NCBI RefSeq assembly: GCF_006345805.1
Contig: NC_043007.1
Location: 55,304,001 to 55,368,000 of the forward strand
Source: Octopus sinensis
Lineage: Eukaryota
Direction of reading: 5' to 3'
Length of the DNA: 64,000 nucleotides
Made by a program: the position numbers and the translations under genes. Positions 6,600-56,940 of the stretch are shown here, one piece after another (the stretch's first letter is position 1; every line of letters starts with the position of its first letter). Below the pieces are notes generated by a model. The model had not been told where the DNA came from. It saw only the letters and a list, made by a program, of their open reading frames with translations, and did not search any database.

Positions 6600-7230
6600 A
6601 AGAGAGAGAACAGATGTCACCAAACCTCCACGAACTAATAAAAAACACCGGTCATGCTATATTAGTGTGGAAGATATTGCCCTCATCAGTCGCAGTTGCC
6701 TCAAAATGTCAACAAGAATTCTATCTGCCCTTGAGAAATGATATTGTAGCAAAAGCTGTTTACAATGCTATCTGCAGGAAGAGTTGCTTTGGCGAATATA
6801 TCAAAGGCATATGAGAATCGGAATGTACTTATACAAGGAATACTTCAATAGAAACATCAATTCGGTACAAACATAACAGACCTGATATTGTTCAGTGGGA
6901 CGGGGAAACAAAAGTCATGCAGCGTTATCAGAGGTAAGCTCTCCAGCAGAAGTGAACGTACCATCAGAACTTCAGGAAAAAGAAAATTTATGGTGAACTT
7001 ACAGCTCATGTTCCTTGGCTATAAATCTTCATTTGCACTTATTATCATAGGTGCATTAGACTATGTAACTCCATAGTTTCGTGCAAAAATATAGAAATGC
7101 TAGGATTTTCTTTGAAAGAGCAAAATAAACTGACGCGCGTCCTTCAAACCCAAGCCTATTTAGCGGAAAAGATGGTCGCTAGAAAAGTAGAAAATTTGAA
7201 GGCAAAACTGAGAAGCATTAATTAGATCAT
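6600..7230 (+). mobile_element. Second R4/Dong-like LINE 3' fragment (zinc-finger remnant plus RLE)
   Basis: RNDIVAKAVY, HNRPDIVQW and IIIGALDYV in broken frames. Confidence 0.7.
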
Positions 7231-7721
7231 CAAGAAACTATGTGACAGCTGGTTTCTGATTCATTGTTTCTGGTATGGAATGAGCACGTAATCATAACAA
7301 GTATTGACGCCATTTGCTTCTGAGTGAATCACACAAGAAGGCAGAAAGCTGTAGAAAGAAACAGCTATTAGACTTTCAGAGACAAACTATTGTTCTTTTC
7401 AAGAGTGAAAATCTGACTTGGGAACTGACTAAATGTTTGACTGTGTTACCGAACGTCTTTCAACTATCACAATACTGTTGTTGCAACTTTGAAACTTTGT
7501 TTACCTCAAATAGATCTTGTGAAAATATAAATTGGCATTTCACGAATTTTCCGCTTTTCTAGCGACCATACTGTATAAAAAGTAATGAAGCACACACGCG
7601 CGCGCACACAGACACACACAGACACGGACACACAGACACACACACGCACAGTCACAGACCCCCATCCACGCACACACGCACACACGCACGCGCGCACAAA
7701 CACACACACGCGCGCGCTCAT

Positions 7722-48994: not shown

Positions 48995-51745
48995 ACATTT
49001 TGTTACTCTCAAATTCAGTATGTGACACACTACTTGTACTTATAAGGCAAATCTGTGTAGCTATATGTGCTACATATCACCTTCCAGATTTTCCAAATCA
49101 TGTAGGCAAGTTTGAAGTCTGCCTTACAAAAATAGAAGTTCTAGTCACATTAGGACAACACATAAGTGTACTTCTTATGGGAGACTTCAATCTGCCCAAC
49201 GTTAGATGGCCCGAAGGCCTTTCTCTCCTAGGAATGACACGGTGCGAACAAGGACAGGTGAGGTCCCTCCTAAACCTCATCAACACTTTGTACATGGAGC
49301 AAATAGTACTTCAACCAATCAGGGCAGGTAACATACTGGATCTCTGCTTCACAAATAATATGGATCTAATCCATAATGTGAAAGTGACACCGACGCTACT
49401 CTCGGATCACAACATGGTAGAGCTGACCATGTACGGGCCAAAGGAAAGCATGGACATGCAGCCTACAAGAAACTCTCAGAATCTTTCCAGCTTGAACTTC
49501 CATAAGGCAAACTGGAAACAAATTGAAAAAGAGATCCTCAAACAAAACTGGTCTAAATGTCTCTCCTCACCGGACATCGACATGAAACTTCAACATTTCA
49601 TGTCTGTAATGCAAGCCATATGCTACAAATGTGTCCCAGAGAGAAAGGCCACTGTATACAAGAACAATATTCCCAGCGAGAGGAAATTCTTATGAGACGG
49701 CGTACAAAAGTTTCAAATCGCCTAAACAAACAAATTGAAAGCAGTGAAAAGTCTCGCCTGAAAATAAAACTGGTGGAAATTGAAAAAAGTCTGCAACCCG
49801 CCCATGAAAAAGAAAGAGCACACAAAGAAGCCTGGGCTATAGTCAACATAAAATCTAACCCCAGAGCTTTCTACAAGTTTGCCAAAGAAACAGTTTCGGT
49901 GCACTGCAGGATAGGGCCACTCCTCGAAAAAGATGGTACACTCACAGGAAATCCAATGAGGATAAGTGAAATACTAAATGAGCAATTCAAAAGTATTTTC
50001 ACTCCACCCCTAGGGCACTTTCAAGTCAGCAATCCAACTGACTTCTTTACCACTGCAGATATAAAAACAGAGGCAATGATGACTGATTACATCAATATAA
50101 AGGAAGACGATGTAATAAGGGCTATAGATGAAATGAACCCAAACTCAGCTACTGGCCCCGATGGATTCCCCGCAATCCTTCTAAAAGTATGTAAGCGAGT
50201 CCTAGAAAGACCACTGCAGTCCCTCTTTCAGAGCTTCCTTGCAACTGGCAAACTTCCAAGAAAACTGAAGGCGGGTAAAATATGCCCTATTCATAAAGGA
50301 GGTAGCAGAGCGGAGGCCAAGAACTACAGACCTATCTCTCTGGCCTCACACATCAGCAAGTTCATGGAACGAATAGTCAGAAGAAAACTAATCGCTTTCC
50401 TTGAAGAAAATGACTTGCTGCCTGACACCCAACATAGTTTCCGACCAGGGAGAAGCTGCCTAACTCAGCTCTTACAACAATATGACTAGGTGCTGAAACA
50501 ACTGCTCAACCACTCAAATGTGGAAGTGATATATCTCGACTTTGCAAAGGCCTTTGATATCATGTCACAAACTGTGTGATCTTGGCATAGTTGGAAAGTT
50601 GGGAGAATGGCTTCATGACTTTCTGAAGGATAAAAGTCAGGTGGTAGTAGCCAAAGGGGTCACCTCCAATGACACGCAAATGTTGAGTAGTGTTCTGCAA
50701 GACACTGTTTTGGGACCACTACTGTAATGGCCCTCTCAGACATGTCCTCAGCCACACAGAGAGTCACGATCACAAGTTATGCAGATGATACAAAAGTTTC
50801 ACAGGTAAAACAGAACCCTGAAGACGCTATGCACCTGCAATGTGAACTGGATGAAATATACAAGTGGGCTGAAAAAAATAGCATGCAGTTTAATGCTGAA
50901 AAGTTCCAAGCTTTGTGCTATTAGCATGCAAAACTAAATGCAATACCCAACACATACACTGGACCTGGAAAGATTGCAATCCCAGAGGCACAATCAGTGC
51001 GAGACCTGGGTATTTACATGAGTAATGATGCAACCTCTCATGTGCATGTTGCTAAATTGGCAATGAAATGTAGGCGGCTGACCGGATGGATTCTTAGAAC
51101 TTTTAGAACAAGAGACCAAGAAACCATAATGGTCCTCTGGAGGAAACTTTCCTAAGCCACTTAGACTACTGCTCTCAGCTATGGTCACCAACCAGTTTCA
51201 AATTAATCTCAGAACTTGAGGCAATCCAACGAAGCTACACGAAGAAGATAGCCTCTGTGCAACATATAAGCTATAGGGAAAGACTCAAGAGATTAAGACT
51301 CTATTCCTTAGAGCGTAAGCGAGAAATATATGCCATAATATACATCTGGAAGATCCTGGCATCGAGAGTTACACAAATACTAGAGCTAGGCGTCACTGCA
51401 TAGTGCCAAGGACTCCAAATTTGCCATCAAGATGTAGGACAAGATACTGCAATAGCCTGGGCTTCAGAGGTCCACAGCTCTTCAATATCCTCCCGAAGGA
51501 CCTGAGAGGCCTGCATGGGGTGGATGTAGGTGTCTTCAAAATAAAGCTGGACCTCTTCCTGTCAGGTGTCCCAGATGAACCAACTTCGCGACAGGAGGTG
51601 CAAATGAGGGCAGCTGCATCAAACTCTCTCATGCACCAAATGTCAATTGCTAAAAAGCATTCGTGAAGTAACATCATGTAGCAACACCAAATGGCGGTGC
51701 CCCAGCATTGCCACAGCTCGTGAGCTGAAACTAGATGAAAAAATA
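48995..51745 (+). mobile_element. Degenerate CR1-type LINE (partial APE plus RT to the 3' end)
   Basis: MGDFNLPNVRW, GNILDLCFTN, ATGPDGFP, PIHKGG..NYRPISL, GRSCLTQLL, YADDTK, LYSLERKRE; 3' tail ggcggtgccccagcattgccacag. Confidence 0.9.
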
Positions 51746-53490
51746 TTTGATGGTTATGACCCACGAACCTTGCAATGGTGGGTGTTCCCACAGCTCTTCC
51801 ACTTTGGGTGAACCTGACAGCACTCGATTGGGTTGATTTGTCCCTTCCCCGAGGAACCCGTGTTTCGTTTGGGGCAGAATGACTTTAGTCGGAGGGGCAC
51901 CTGCGGTGCCCTATAGGAACACCGGTGTGGATGGTGTACAGGGGGATACACACCTGCAGTGCTGGCAGCGAGGCGAGAGGGTGGATGCACCATCAAGTTT
52001 GTCTGGTATGTTATGATCACTGCCAGGCTTCACCCATAGGGACACTACCTTGTCGTGGTTTAAGAGCTTACGTCTGCGGGCGGGACGCAAGCCATTATTG
52101 GCCTTGCGGGCGCCAACCCGTCAGCGGACTAACTAAATGTGTCCTTTTCCCCATAGCGGTTCCAATTATTTAGTGGGGACCAAGCAGTGCGGAGGATTAT
52201 CGTGTGCAGAGTGGGATGATACCCTGCTGTTGGTCGTGGTTGCGCTTGTCGGCCTCCTGCTCATCCGAGTCGGTCACTACCTGGCTTCGGTGTGGTGTGA
52301 AGGCCCCCTATTTCTTTAAAGAATTTCACGGGGCGGCGCCCACGGACGGCCATGGTTAGAACGGCCGGGTTCGCTCTCCGGATTGGGCTGCTGACGGGGC
52401 GAGGTAGGGATGGGGTGTTTCCACCCTGCCTCTTATCTCGCCCATAAGTTAGCGCCTCGTGAAGGTTGCTGTCCCTGCTGTCCCTGCTGTCCCTGCTGTC
52501 CTTGGGTGGCTCACGACGTTGTCTCCTGACGCCGATTGTTGTGGCTCACACAATTTATTGCTGGAGCGGACTCACTTTCGGCCTCATTACGGGAGCCAGT
52601 CAACTGACGGGTAAACCGTCAATATTGACTTTGTCTCCTGACGCCAGATTGTTGTGACTCACGCAATTTATTGCGTGAGTGGACTCACTTTCGGCCTCAC
52701 TACGGGAGACAGTCGAATGACTGGTAAACCGTCAGTATTGAGCCCTTCGCGGACGGTTGCGGGGTTTTTGGCTTAGTATGAGGACTTCGGTTGGCTAGGA
52801 AGGATGTTGGCCTACGGTCTGCAGGGTCTGACTCCTTACTCTTGTACTCTTGACTTTCTTCCTTTTACTCTTGGAAAATGCCGCGAAGTCCAGTTCGTTA
52901 ATAAATAAGTTACGAAACACACGGTTGCCAGGGGCCGTATAAGATGGTGGCTTGTGGGCAAAAGAGCGGGGCTCCAAGCCTGGCCGAGCGTGTTGCCCAA
53001 CCACGTTTGGCCCATATCTACGCTTCCTGCAGTTGTATAGAGCCATTTACACTGCAGGTAATACCAATGGCTCGCACACCAAACTTGACCCTGAGAGTTT
53101 ATATCGGATCCTGCACATAAAACCCCCTCGATGAAGTGCTCAATTTTTTTTTTTTTTTTTGAGGACCGAGAGACTGGTGTGTAGGATGCCCCTCAAGTTT
53201 TTTTTTTTTTTTTTTTTGAGGAGGCGGCATGGTTTGGGGGCCGTGCCTCGATATGAGCTTAAATTTAAATAAATGAAAATCAAAATAACAACCCGAATTG
53301 GACATTTAGCTTCTTCTGACTATCGAAGAAGCACCCGCTTCTGTTAGTTTTAGATCCCCACTACTTAGGTAGTTTTTCTGTTTTTTTTATTTTATTTTAT
53401 TCGTAAGGTTAACTTAAGCTGGGACCTGGCTACGACAGCGTGGGACCACCCACGATAAAATACAGGGAAGGAGAGTGAATCTCATTTAGA
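51746..53490. other. Unidentified ~1.7-kb, GC-richer, structured sequence joined to 28S at the R2 cleavage position (candidate R2-related insert)
   Basis: Junction ...tctcatttaga|TAGCCAAATGCC; the normal upstream 28S sequence (gggagtaactatgactctcttaagg) is absent; no RT or RLE motifs found by eye. Confidence 0.45.
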
Positions 53491-53567
53491 TAGCCAAATG
53501 CCTCGTTATCTAATTAGTGACGCGCATGAACGGATCAACGAGATTCCCACTGTCCCTATCTACTGTT

Positions 53568-53600
<33 letters not shown>

Positions 53601-53607
53601 CGGATCG

Positions 53608-53647
<40 letters not shown>

Positions 53648-55080
53648 TTTTGTGAGGGCACACGGTAGGCGTAGCATAGGCGGTAGCATTCGCGTTGCCC
53701 CGCGCCGGGCGTTGCCGTCACCGGCGGCGCGCTGGCGTGCTGTTCGTTGTCCGCGCCGTCGCGCCTCGCGCGGCGGTCGGTTTCGTCGGTGCGCCGTGGG
53801 CGCCGTCGGCTAAGCGCGTTCGACGTCGGGGTGTCGCGCGCGTTTGCGACGATGAAAAACCGCCACTTCCGTAGTTTCCTCGCTCACTCGATGGAGAAGG
53901 GATCGGGCCGTCGCCGCAACGAACGACGGCCCGCGCACGCGCCGGGAGGCGCAATGTACGCCGACGCACGAGAAGGCCGCGCGCGCGGATCCGACAACCG
54001 CGACGACGCCCCGGCCGCGCGCGCGCTTTCCGGACCGGGAGGTCCGTAGGCGGCGGCACGCAGCGACGGAACGCAGCGCAGCGGAAGGAAAGAACGCGCG
54101 CGTAGAAGCCGACCCGCGTTGACCGAAGGCGCGACCGCGCACCGGCGCGTGGCGGGTTGCCCGCCGACGCTGCGACGACCGCCGGAAAAATGGGGCGCAC
54201 CGGGATGCCGAGTCCGACGCCAACGCTACAGCCCCGTACCGGTCCGCCGCTTCGCGTGAAGACGTGTTCCGGCGCCCGGCGGCGCGACGCCGAGCGAACG
54301 GCGTCGCGGCCGCGCGGGAGCGAGGCGACACACACGGCAGTTTTAAAATGTTGAGCAATCATCAGCCATTTATAGAGGTTTTCTATTAATACATAATTTT
54401 CATATTAATAGATAACATTATAGAGAAGGTAGATATATAGGCAAAGATGTCGATTTAAAATTTAAGAAAATTAAGGTAGTAGAGTTTATCTTCCGACTGA
54501 AGAATATTCATTAAGTTATTTTGAACTACTAGAAGGTTGGGAAGTATAATCAGTTGAAAGAAGAGAAAAAGATTTTCTATTTATAGAAATAGGGGTGAAA
54601 TAAATGTCAGAAGGTCTTCATAAAGAAATTAAGGTAGAGAGGGGGTTTCGTCGGTGCGCCGTGGGCGCCGTCGGCTAAGCGCGTTCGACGTCGGGGTGTC
54701 GCGCGCGTTTGCGACGATGAAAAACCGCCACTTCTGTAGTTTCCTCGCTCACTCGATGGAGAAGGGATCGGGCCGTCGCCGAGCGGTGGTTCATTATCTG
54801 GTGCGAAGCGCGCGGTGCATGTCGAGCGCCTTTGCGGGCGCCGGCGCAGCCGATGCGCGACCCTTAGTCGAGAACAGTGTCGGTCGGGGAGTTTGACTGG
54901 GGCGGTACGTCTGTAAAACGGTAACGCAGGTGTCCCAAGGCGAGCTCAGCGTGGACGGAAACCACACGTCGAGCAAAAGGGCAAAAGCTCGCTCGATCTC
55001 GATTTTCAGTACGAATACGGACCGCGAAAGCGTGGCCCATCGATCCTTCCGAATTACAGCGGCGAGCTATGCGTCCGCCG

Positions 55081-55123
<43 letters not shown>

Positions 55124-55146
55124 GGCCAAGCGTTCGCAGCGACGTC

Positions 55147-55184
<38 letters not shown>

Positions 55185-55226
55185 CGAAGCAGAATTCGCA
55201 AAGCGTTGGATTGTTCACCCACTAAC

Positions 55227-55273
<47 letters not shown>

Positions 55274-55875
55274 TCCTACCGATGCATCGCGCGTACGCGG
55301 CGCCCCGAGTCGCGTCGGGGTACTCGGCGTGCGGTCGAGGCGGCGGCGCGCTCGCGCGTCCGTCCGTCCTGGCCGTGCCGCCGGCGTTTCTCCGGCCGAC
55401 CTTAGGGGGCGTCGGCAACGTCAACTCGGCTACGGCTATCCCGTCCAGTACGAGAGGAACCGCGGGATCAGAGCAACGGTTTGCGCGCTCGCTCGATAGA
55501 GCGGTGGTGCCAGGCTGCCTCTGAGCGATAACGGCTGAACGCCTCTAAGCCGGAACCGTAGCCGGACCCGAGTTGTTTTCCAAAAGCGTCTCAACCTCAA
55601 GGCGCATGCCTTAGCTCGGCGTTCGCCGTCCGCCCGTCGCGTTCGCGCGGCGAGCGGCAGCGTCGCCGGCGGAATTGCCATTCGGGGACGCGGCGGCGGC
55701 CGCGGCGTTCGCGCCGTGGTCGTCTGCTCGTCGTCCCGCCCCGACTAGTTCGAAGAGATCGAGACGAAAGGGATCGCTTGCATACGACCCGACTTGCCGT
55801 TCGGAGTGACGTGCTTAGTAGAGCAGCTACCACACTGCGATCTATTGAGTCTCTTCTCGCGAACGACACGATCCG
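53491..55875 (+). rRNA. 28S: 28S rRNA, 3' portion (dispersed copy, probably a pseudogene), interrupted by a duplication/insertion at 53917-54781
   Basis: tagccaaatgcctcg.., gaaagaagaccctgttgagcttgactctag, ggggagtttgactggggcgg, gtgtcagaaaagttaccacagggataactggcttgtggc, ctgaacgcctctaag, gagcagc..ctgcgatctattga. Confidence 0.95.
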
Positions 55876-56077
55876 CCCCTTCGAGGCGGAGAAGCGGGAG
55901 GAGGTGAGGAAAGATGGCGAAATTGTTGCGGCTTGGAGTCGGAGTCGGAGGAGTTACGAAGTGTTTGTGTTGCGTTGTGTCTCGTCTCGTCTCGTCACGT
56001 CTTGTCTGCGTCGAACGACTCGGCGCGCGGTAATAGTCGTCGTCGCCGTAACCGCCTTCGTCTCGGCCGACGAATCG

Positions 56078-56192
56078 AGCGCGCATCGGCTTAGCAGCGC
56101 GCATCGGCTTAGCAGCGCGCATCGGCTTAGCAGCGCGCATCGGCTTAGCAGCGCGCATCGGCTTAGCAGCGCGCATCGGCTTAGCAGCGCGC
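56078..56192. repeat. 18-bp tandem repeat (agcgcgcatcggcttagc) x ~6.4
   Basis: Direct inspection. Confidence 0.95.
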
Positions 56193-56940
56193 GCTCCGTT
56201 GCGGGTTCGTTTAAGTGAGAAGTGGAAGAAACGCAACCTCCTGCTTAGTGCGCGAGTAGACGGGGTTGCTGCGCCAGCATGCAGCACCCCTGTCTGTCGT
56301 AACTTTCTGTACCGCCGACGAGTCGTCGCTCGTCGGCGGCGGCGTCCGGCTCGGGCCCCGGTCTCGCGGAGCGACGTACAAACTCTGAGTGGGACACCGC
56401 GACTGCCTGTTGTCGAAGCGGCGACTTCTGGGCATCGTCGCCCGATTGGCGAGGCGCCGCGTGAACGGATCGAGGTCGAGGAGCGTGTCCCTATCTACTG
56501 TCTAGCGAATGCAGAGCCGAGGGTACGGGCTTGAAGAAGTTCTCGGTATCGAGTGCGGGTAAGCGGCGGGAGTAACTTGAACGGATCGAAGGCGACGAGG
56601 ATATTGCCGCTGTCCCTATCTACTACTGTCTAGCGATAAGCAGAGCTGAGTTACGACGAAGACCACGAGTGTGTGTGTCCGTGTGTTATCCACGCGCATC
56701 GAAGCGGCGATTTCACTTGAGAGAGTTCTCGGTCGAGTGCACGGGTCGAAAGAGTTATGCGGCCGGTCGATTGCCGGGGAGTAAGTCTGAGTTACGACGA
56801 AGACCACGAGTGTGTGTGTCCGTGTGTTATCCACGCGGTCCGACCCGTAAGTCGAAGGAATCAGACCCGTATGCTTGCGGGTCGGCCCCGGTTTGGATAG
56901 TCACGCTCTAGGTGACCGTCGCACCCCAAGGGGGTCAGGA

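Follow-up and report, generated by a model that had tools for sequence, protein, structure and literature searches.

In Drosophila, the R2 insertion site of the 28S ribosomal RNA (rRNA) gene also holds Short Internally Deleted Elements (SIDEs), which have no open reading frame (ORF). One of these, R2Dwi_SIDE, is 529 bp long, ends in poly(A), and shows less than 3% divergence in D. willistoni (Eickbush & Eickbush 2012, PMC3414825). Some R2 ribozymes cleave upstream in 28S (13-36 nt), and the uniformity of R2 5' junctions has been attributed to retained 28S nucleotides that anneal to the target (Eickbush, Burke & Eickbush 2013, PMC3774820). In a full-text search of 8.4 million papers, we found no report of non-autonomous R2 derivatives outside Drosophila. 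Here we analyze a 64,000-nt stretch of the Octopus sinensis genome (NC_043007.1, positions 55,304,001 to 55,368,000, forward strand), which we call the window. At 51746-53490 it contains an insert that is very probably a fossil copy of a non-autonomous element that derives from an octopus R2 by internal deletion, or in other words a long "SIDE." We named the insert and its relatives the fA family.

Like the R2 SIDEs, fA has no ORF and lies at the R2 site of 28S. Its 5' end is predicted to be an R2-type ribozyme that resembles the hepatitis delta virus (HDV) ribozyme and has a large J1/2 loop, and its 3' end is related to the 3' untranslated region (UTR) of a co-resident autonomous R2. Also as in the SIDEs, nucleotide differences fall in loops or are compensatory, and the variation of the 5' junctions is of the R2 type. 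There are several differences. fA copies are about 1.65-1.8 kb long and have no poly(A). Whereas a SIDE consists of a ribozyme and a 3' UTR only, fA keeps a long 5' part homologous to the R2 5' UTR, along with a remnant of the ORF start, and its 3' similarity to R2 extends over just 55-75 nt or so. Unlike the nearly uniform SIDEs of D. willistoni, fA has many subfamilies, with identities down to 72%. Finally, fA lives in a cephalopod whose genome has at least three R2 lineages, and self-cleavage of fA is predicted.

We examined the junction with 28S and the content of the insert. A first-pass annotation, made from the letters of the window alone, had stated that 28S homology begins at 53491, at the R2 nick site, and that the preceding sequence is unrelated to rRNA. 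Both statements hold. The 3' part of a 28S rRNA gene is present in the window (Rfam LSU_rRNA_eukarya, 594 bits), and positions 53491-53520, searched alone, match positions 2280-2309 of this large-subunit (LSU) model, with UAGCCAAAUGCC as the first letters. At another genomic locus, which is occupied by R2, the part of 28S upstream of the insertion stops at model position 2279 (...CUCUUAAGG). Since one part stops at 2279 and the other begins at 2280, the canonical R2 3' junction falls at position 53491, and the preceding 1745 nt do not belong to rRNA. The annotation had also reported no reverse transcriptase (RT), CCHC, or PD..D motifs in the frames it read, and our searches agree: the largest ORF in the insert is at most 88 aa, there is no Pfam match and no RT remnant, and the genome's own R2 protein shows no similarity to the insert by tblastn (best E 0.74). 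An autonomous R2 has a single ORF with zinc-finger/Myb, RT, and restriction-like endonuclease domains, which the insert lacks. The insert also contains no tRNA, and hence no tRNA-type pol III head of a short interspersed nuclear element, and no Rfam small RNA matches it at the gathering score or at E up to 10 (no 5S or 7SL head).

The insert is one of a family. When used as a query against the 2.7-Gb assembly, it gave 61 matches, which resolve into 18 fA copies that start at query positions 2-12 and end at 1724-1745. The copies measure 1.64-1.98 kb; relatives with a 5' end of their own span 1.65-1.8 kb and contain no ORF. Because 18 copies of this sequence with identical ends exist in the genome, the junction in the window did not arise by chance. 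Ten copies, including the window's, continue into 28S from TAGCC, and six (L003, L004, L016-L018, and L020) have 28S on both sides, in register. These full-length relatives gave us the 5' junction in silico. The complete insertion lies between ...CTCTTAAG and TAGCC... of 28S. At the 5' junction, ...GGGAGTAACTATGACTCTCTTAAG is joined to TGGGGCTTGATGG... (in a shorter rendering, ...GACTCTCTTAAG to TGGGGCTTGATGG...), and at the 3' junction, ...TTTAGA is joined to TAGCC, at LSU model position 2280. The window copy shares 98% identity with L002, 96% with L003 and L004, 94% with L005, and 90% with L006 and L007. Further copies are at 86% (L010), 82% (L012), 79-80% (L014-L023), and 72% (L030). A graded ladder from 98% to 72% is the pattern expected from a succession of master copies.

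The first-pass annotation placed the left edge of the insert at 51746. This is not the element's own 5' end, as full-length relatives have 14 nt more. An abundant long interspersed nuclear element (LINE) ends at this point. All 39 LINE copies examined elsewhere (93-97% identical) stop matching at window positions 51736-51748 (positions 387-399 of a query that spanned window 51350-51800). The missing 14 nt include the 5' strand of ribozyme helix P1 (CUCUUAA). Since this is precisely the point where the LINE family stops, insertion of the LINE accounts for the loss better than incomplete reverse transcription does. (The LINE family is young and very abundant, with 4278 first-look candidates.)

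The same genome holds autonomous R2 elements. R2-A is a 4.6-kb insertion at the R2 site (L045:2735-7317) with an intact frame of 1302-1311 aa, which matches RVT_1 (E 5e-28) and solved R2 proteins (E 5e-158). A second copy of R2-A (L047) lies 2 Mb from the window. With the RT part of R2-A as a genome query, we found many more copies, including lineages at 55-64% amino acid identity. At the R2-B and R2-C loci (L009, L012, and L049-L058), tblastn places N-terminal coding regions about 1 kb downstream of fA-type ribozyme cores and C-terminal coding regions just upstream of fA-type 3' modules. Because their coding regions lie between such cores and modules, we consider R2-B and R2-C to be autonomous lineages. 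(Two candidate families, "fB" and "fC," had been taken as further non-autonomous elements; the RT search and tblastn identified them as the 5' ends of autonomous R2 lineages, so we rejected that reading.) fA has the same insertion site as these R2s, the same 3' hairpin, a homologous ribozyme core and P5 hairpin, and a homologous start-codon region, but it lacks the sequence that encodes the RT, the endonuclease, and the zinc finger. Plain blastn of the insert against R2-A aligns the 28S flank only; the relationship is visible via motifs and via lineages B and C.

Several features of the R2 loci are recorded here for completeness. At L049 (G000:C27:14098930-14102100, minus strand), the R2-B 5' leader contains a unit of about 17-23 nt (...CTCTCTTGTGGGGCCTG...) that is repeated about 9 times in tandem, roughly 215-375 nt upstream of the ribozyme core. 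The R2-B copies on this contig (14.07-14.11 Mb) are spaced by about 8.7 kb. A further R2 lineage, with 44% amino acid identity to R2-A, is found at L048 (G000:C27:14066000-14075999, minus strand). It joins 28S at ...CTCTTAAT (reverse-complement position 1399) and begins almost at its ATG, so it is 5'-truncated; the next TAGCC is about 6 kb away.

The autonomous elements bear on the first reading that the annotation had offered, namely that the 1.74 kb is an unusually long 3' UTR of a 5'-truncated autonomous R2. The insert does stop at the R2 3' junction and has an R2 3' module, and 5'-truncated R2 copies are common (the one at L048, of another lineage, is at the R2 site). But the relatives of the insert have a fixed 5' end of their own, with a leader and a ribozyme, beside the upstream half of 28S. 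In R2-A the 3' UTR measures about 0.5 kb (in L045, the ORF ends at 6810 and the element at 7317), and in R2-B about 0.3 kb. In no fA copy does RT or endonuclease coding sequence lie upstream. We excluded this reading, as it is almost certainly wrong.

The 3' end of fA ties it to R2. fA, R2-A, and R2-B/C share an order of parts: a hairpin GUGGGACC(A/G)CCCAC, an A-rich linker, AGGGAA, a short variable hairpin, a tail of 7-9 nt, and then TAGCC. The 3' hairpin and AGGGAA are invariant in all 15 fA and R2 sequences compared, and the hairpin is identical in all three R2 lineages examined. The closing pair of the hairpin covaries (U-A in 8 sequences, U-G in 3, C-G in 2, and A-U in 2). The window's module is 69-73% identical to R2-B/C ends versus 56-64% to R2-A, and one R2-B end carries the same AUUUAGA tail. 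This disposes of the suggestion that the last bases of the insert echo the target: they are the family's own tail, common to an autonomous R2 lineage, and we reject target mimicry. The 3' module of fA is closest to lineage B/C, which would be the candidate source of the protein.

Could an element at this site have been moved by machinery other than R2's, such as another site-specific LINE or an abundant one? The similarity between fA and R2 at the 3' end is confined to about 55-75 nt, and an abundant LINE adjoins the window copy. However, that LINE has no terminal sequence in common with fA and just ends there. fA is inserted precisely at the R2 nick, its 3' hairpin recurs unchanged in the three R2 lineages examined, and its junctions show neither poly(A) tails nor target-site duplications of another type. 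We therefore consider non-R2 machinery very improbable. An unrelated element at the site, which was the annotation's third reading, is excluded, as both termini and an internal patch are homologous to R2s of the same genome. The same homologies support its second reading, a non-autonomous R2 parasite.

Inside the element, fA is collinear with R2 in three patches: the ribozyme core, the start-codon region, and a further patch at fA positions 1383-1521. By blastn, the start-codon patch is 75-78% identical over 83-85 nt to L009, L055, and L048, and it includes the ATG and the first codons of those R2s. In fA the remnant is non-coding, with a stop 7 codons after the ATG. The N-terminal peptides of R2-B, R2-C, and R2-D match fA copies in tblastn searches of the kind that the first-pass annotation had proposed (E down to 1e-7). 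The intervening 5' UTR is mostly too diverged to align between fA and R2. Because fA has the 3' RNA module, the ribozyme core, and the start-codon remnant in common with R2s, we interpret it as an internally deleted non-autonomous derivative. Judging from these alignments, fA would be an R2-B/C-like element minus nearly all of its ORF; the 5' UTR, the beginning of the ORF, and roughly the last 75 nt would remain. The origin by internal deletion from a full-length R2 is supported, though incompletely.

We then turned to the 5' end, where an HDV-like ribozyme had been suggested as something to look for. Within fA, positions 52039-52145 are homologous to roughly the first 170 nt of R2-A, and also to sequence in the 5' regions of R2-B and R2-C (72-75% identity to R2-B/C cores by blastn). 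Its parts follow the order of an HDV-like ribozyme, and in our model P1-P4 would form the nested double pseudoknot. RNAalifold on 16 fA copies found P2, P3, P4, and P5 independently and also predicted the closing helix H1. Across 29 sequences from all families, 91% of the cells are paired, versus 38-53% with slid partners, and 8 pairs change on both sides, which was reached by one of 500 shuffles. All 29 sequences have C52133 with U/G-A-A after it, which suggests a catalytic role for this C; the consensus of J4/2 is UAAC-UAAA. In P5, the pair 151-181 is C-G in 20 sequences, U-G in 6, and U-A in 2, and the R2-A equivalent of this stem is CUCCC/GGGAG. P2 in R2-A (GGGUUGCU with AGCAGCCC) is fully compensated relative to the other families, as judged by manual pairing.

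The 5' strand of P1 is the 7 nt just before GUGGGGC at the element start, 136-360 nt upstream of the other strand. The leader and its partner are CUCUUAA and UUAAGAG in young fA, CUCUUAC and GUAAGAG in old fA, CACUUAU and GUAAGAG in L030, CUCUCUU and AAGAGAG in R2-B and R2-A, and CUCUUUC and GAAAGAG in R2-C and a sister family, fD. In a 19-sequence alignment, P1, H1, and H2 together are 93% paired versus 31-52% when slid, and 36 cells change on both sides versus 10.9 expected (0 of 500 shuffles). There are three compensatory pairs in P1 and two in H1. Across families, one H1 pair is U-A, C-G, or U-G, and another is A-U, U-A, or G-C. H2 is 97.7% paired and barely varies. Overall, P1, P3, P4, H1, and P5 show covariation.

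The sister family fD was seen at two loci, L062 (G000:C20:21382720-21385970) and L063 (C6:18042840-18046040), both with an fA-like expanded J1/2 domain and the P1 set CUCUUUC/GAAAGAG. No R2 coding sequence was seen nearby, and fD may be a second non-autonomous family.

Copy boundaries in the related families agree with the predicted cut. Three copies of the R2-C/fD type (leader CUCUUUC) have unrelated flanks and share sequence only from the first P1 nucleotide on. This fits an HDV-type cut, which puts the 5' end of the RNA exactly at that nucleotide. Where old fA copies lie in 28S, the junction reads CTCTTACG instead of the host's CTCTTAAG. Because this differs from host 28S, the leader must have been copied into DNA with the element. 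That in turn agrees with the published proposal that retained 28S-type nucleotides, by annealing to the target, make the junctions uniform (PMC3774820). We predict that fA RNA cleaves itself 5' of the first P1 nucleotide.

Compared with the R2 ribozymes of that study, fA is alike in that the 5' strand of P1 is 28S-type sequence from upstream of the insertion, in its uniform 5' junctions, in a P1 of 6-7 bp, in a variable P4, and in a candidate catalytic C in J4/2. It is unlike them in that the predicted cut is 9 nt upstream of the 3' insertion site (an 8-nt leader) rather than 13-36 nt, in a J1/2 of about 320 nt in two stem-closed domains, and in a J1/4 of 5 nt. Also, in some lineages the leader differs from 28S (CUCUUAC or CUCUUUC) and overwrites the host sequence at the junction.

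How are R2 sites in this genome occupied? The 28S sequence just upstream of the site has 14 matches in the assembly, of which 5 are a divergent 28S type without an insert. The 9 octopus-type sites include 1 that is empty, 2 with R2, 4 with fA, 1 with the 5'-truncated R2 of another lineage, and 1 with a deletion. The 5' junctions of fA copies vary: some are precise, others are deleted or have partial duplications, and still others have flanks that are not 28S and yet carry the leader. Copies outside 28S keep 5-9 nt of it. The divergent 28S type is on small contigs (L034, L035, L036, L043, and L044, on C10266, C12603, C12762, C8697, and C8750) and reads, for instance, ...CGTAATTTAATTGATGACGCGC... 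around the R2 site. It represents either another organism in the assembly (a parasite, symbiont, or contaminant) or very divergent ribosomal DNA (rDNA).

On another contig (G000:C9332:60191-73248, with L006, L009, L012, and L014), five elements form a head-to-tail chain: R2-B/C, fA, R2-B, fA, and fA. Between the members there is no 28S, or only 4 nt of it (TAGC). The chain may have arisen by end-to-end template jumps of the R2 reverse transcriptase or by repeated insertion at element ends.

Taken with the subfamily succession, the varied 5' junctions and the tandem joins to R2-B suggest that fA is mobilized in trans by R2 protein, and fA may be active today. The proposed cycle would run as follows. 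An fA copy in a 28S gene would be co-transcribed with the pre-rRNA. The HDV-like ribozyme would free the fA RNA by a cut just 5' of CUCUUAAG, with P1 pairing the leader to UUAAGAG about 330 nt downstream, across the two stem-closed J1/2 domains. R2 protein would recognize the 3' module (hairpin GUGGGACCACCCAC, then AGGGAA, then the tail) in trans, nick 28S between AAGG and TAGCC, and reverse-transcribe the fA RNA there (target-primed reverse transcription). The 28S-like leader at the end of the cDNA would then anneal upstream and yield the uniform 5' junction.

Several observations weigh against this interpretation. Four of the copies with 28S on both sides (L016-L018 and L020) are essentially identical to each other (100% at the printed rounding), which makes them duplicates at the DNA level rather than independent insertions. 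Many other fA copies lie in decayed rDNA fragments and may have spread as DNA too. An intact ORF is seen in R2-A, while lineages B and C are without a verified intact ORF. As for the ribozyme, P2 hardly varies within fA, R2-B, R2-C, and fD; its compensation is seen only relative to R2-A, where the register is shifted by one and the alignment scores it as broken. Shuffle controls can be beaten by related sequences that have no structure at all. No Rfam ribozyme family or R2 3' element matches the insert or the 5' end of R2-A at the gathering score or at E up to 10, with models that lack a pseudoknot or a core split by about 330 nt. P1.1 is unconvincing (the only possible pairing is GU/AC, 3 nt from P1), L3 and J1/4 barely vary, and the length of J1/4 exceeds the 0-2 nt reported for R2 ribozymes. 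The small terminal hairpin of the 3' module is predicted to be barely more stable than shuffled sequence and is weakly supported.

Some of these points would fit another history, in which one ancient insertion into the R2 hotspot, of unknown origin, spread by DNA-level duplication only, as inert rDNA debris that never retrotransposed. Many copies have the same 28S flank, L016-L018 and L020 are the duplicates just described, and the rDNA in the window is rearranged. But debris does not explain why the 5' junctions differ among copies, including those with the leader beside non-28S flanks, or why there are head-to-tail arrays with R2-B without 28S between. Nor would it keep the 3' module and the ribozyme core at 72% overall identity. 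Also, from one subfamily to the next, changes in the leader are matched by changes in its distant partner, and this needs selection on the RNA during propagation. We consider the debris explanation quite improbable, and we favor a non-autonomous R2 derivative.

Public sequencing runs contain parts of the element in contigs from 20 runs, 12 studies, and 4 organism labels. DNA-type runs gave many short contigs that are 95-100% identical to the insert. In one run of 2.7 G letters (X2), near-identical contigs have a word depth of 350-480; such depths are not copy numbers, and they hint at a high copy number in unassembled rDNA. In a run labeled "RNA?" (guessed to be RNA), an 849-nt contig begins with ACTCTTAAGTGGGGC, 1 nt before the predicted cut, and continues into the element, a start that is consistent with cleavage there. 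All runs were covered as contigs, which cannot prove an RNA end or give an expression level, and this limit belongs with the points against.

The window copy itself is a dead fossil in a rearranged rDNA fragment, as the inverted piece of 28S downstream of it indicates (Table 1). Besides the loss of the first 14 nt, it has a 28-nt deletion that removes the inner hairpin of J1/2 domain 2 (alignment columns 354-381, gapped in this copy only), and it has a C-A mismatch in the inner stem of P5. The 113-nt tandem duplication is present in the window copy, L002-L005, and L007, and other copies have a single unit. Among subfamilies, conservation peaks at 51893-52250 and stays at 0.8-0.9 for a large part of the middle. 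It falls off in two places: at 52453-52650, where the microsatellite and duplication lie, and over the final 240 nt, the 3' module excepted. In the middle 1.2 kb, RNAalifold gave plausible stems with few compensatory changes. (Older fA copies contain a stop-free stretch of 219 aa, which we rejected as a coding sequence; it has no Pfam match and overlaps the ribozyme, and we regard it as a chance feature of GC-rich sequence.)

Table 1. Features in and around the window copy of fA (window positions).
Feature	Positions	Strand	Evidence
Degraded non-LTR (long terminal repeat) retrotransposon with endonuclease- and RT-like ORF pieces; young abundant family, outside fA	49000..51745	+	ORFs; copy-end comparison
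fA element; this copy minus first 14 nt (CTCTTAAGTGGGGC)	51746..53490	+	18 genomic copies with common ends
J1/2 domain 1, about 250 nt; closing helix H1 UUGAUGG 51747-51753 / CCAUCAA 51990-51996	51747..51997	+	RNAalifold; H1 covariation
J1/2 domain 2; helix H2 UCUGGUA 52002-52008 / UGCCAGG 52021-52027	52002..52027	+	alignment
HDV-like ribozyme core (predicted)	52039..52145	+	RNAalifold, pairing, covariation
P2 GGGACAC 52039-52045 / GUGUCCU 52139-52145	within core	+	
P3 ACC 52047-52049 / GGU 52057-52059; L3 UUGUCGU 52050-52056	within core	+	
P1 3' strand UUAAGAG 52060-52066; J1/4 CUUAC 52067-52071	within core	+	
P4 GUCUGC 52072-52077 to GCGGAC 52124-52129	within core	+	
J4/2 UAACUAAAU; candidate catalytic C at 52133	52130-52138	+	invariant C
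Hairpin P5 right after ribozyme; CCCCA 52149-52153 / UGGGG 52174-52178, inner CCAA/UUGG	52149..52178	+	RNAalifold, covariation
9-nt microsatellite (TGCTGTCCC, 3.9 copies), least conserved part of element	52467..52501	+	conservation profile
113-nt tandem duplication, 2 copies, 88% alike	52515..52741	+	repeat search
R2 start-codon region remnant (AAAATGCCGC...), collinear with R2-B/C/D	52875..52958	+	blastn, tblastn
3' module common with R2: box UGGGACCUGGCU 53420-53431; hairpin GUGGGACCACCCAC 53440-53453; AGGGAA 53464-53469; small hairpin GAGA/UCUC 53471-53483; tail AUUUAGA 53484-53490	53420..53490	+	alignment with R2 ends
28S rRNA, +1 to +428 after R2 site, 98.8% to the genome's 28S	53491..53916	+	
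Inverted 28S piece, 369-793 nt upstream of R2 site, 97% identity	53914..54338	-	
305-nt AT-rich insert inside pseudo-28S	54339-54643		
Remaining 28S (+291 to end) and spacer start, 92.6% identical to reference copy	54644..56837	+	

Why would a parasite of R2 be so long? In Bombyx, the region around the R2 5' UTR and ORF start is reportedly a second protein-binding RNA, which is needed for second-strand cleavage. We tentatively raise the possibility, which we think is the less probable outcome, that fA is a long-lived and still abundant hyperparasite of R2. It would be long because it kept the whole R2 5' UTR and the ORF start, needing more than a ribozyme and a 3' tag; its ribozyme would work across a conserved, structured J1/2 of about 320 nt; and its element-encoded P1 leader would overwrite host 28S at each insertion. 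If this is true, fA would supply naturally occurring evidence, marked by sequence, for the model in which R2 5' junctions form by annealing.

The findings matter in several ways. For genome annotation, fA accounts for a recurrent "unknown" insert in rDNA fragments. The natural leader variants, which covary with a partner 330 nt away, are ready compensatory mutants for ribozyme tests, and they can also be used to test the formation of R2 5' junctions. The minimal common 3' hairpin points to what octopus R2 proteins recognize, which has a practical side, since efforts are under way to engineer R2 for site-specific gene insertion (PMC12222951). Finally, an octopus family with many subfamilies, alongside at least three co-resident R2 lineages, indicates that a parasite of a parasite arises outside insects and can last.

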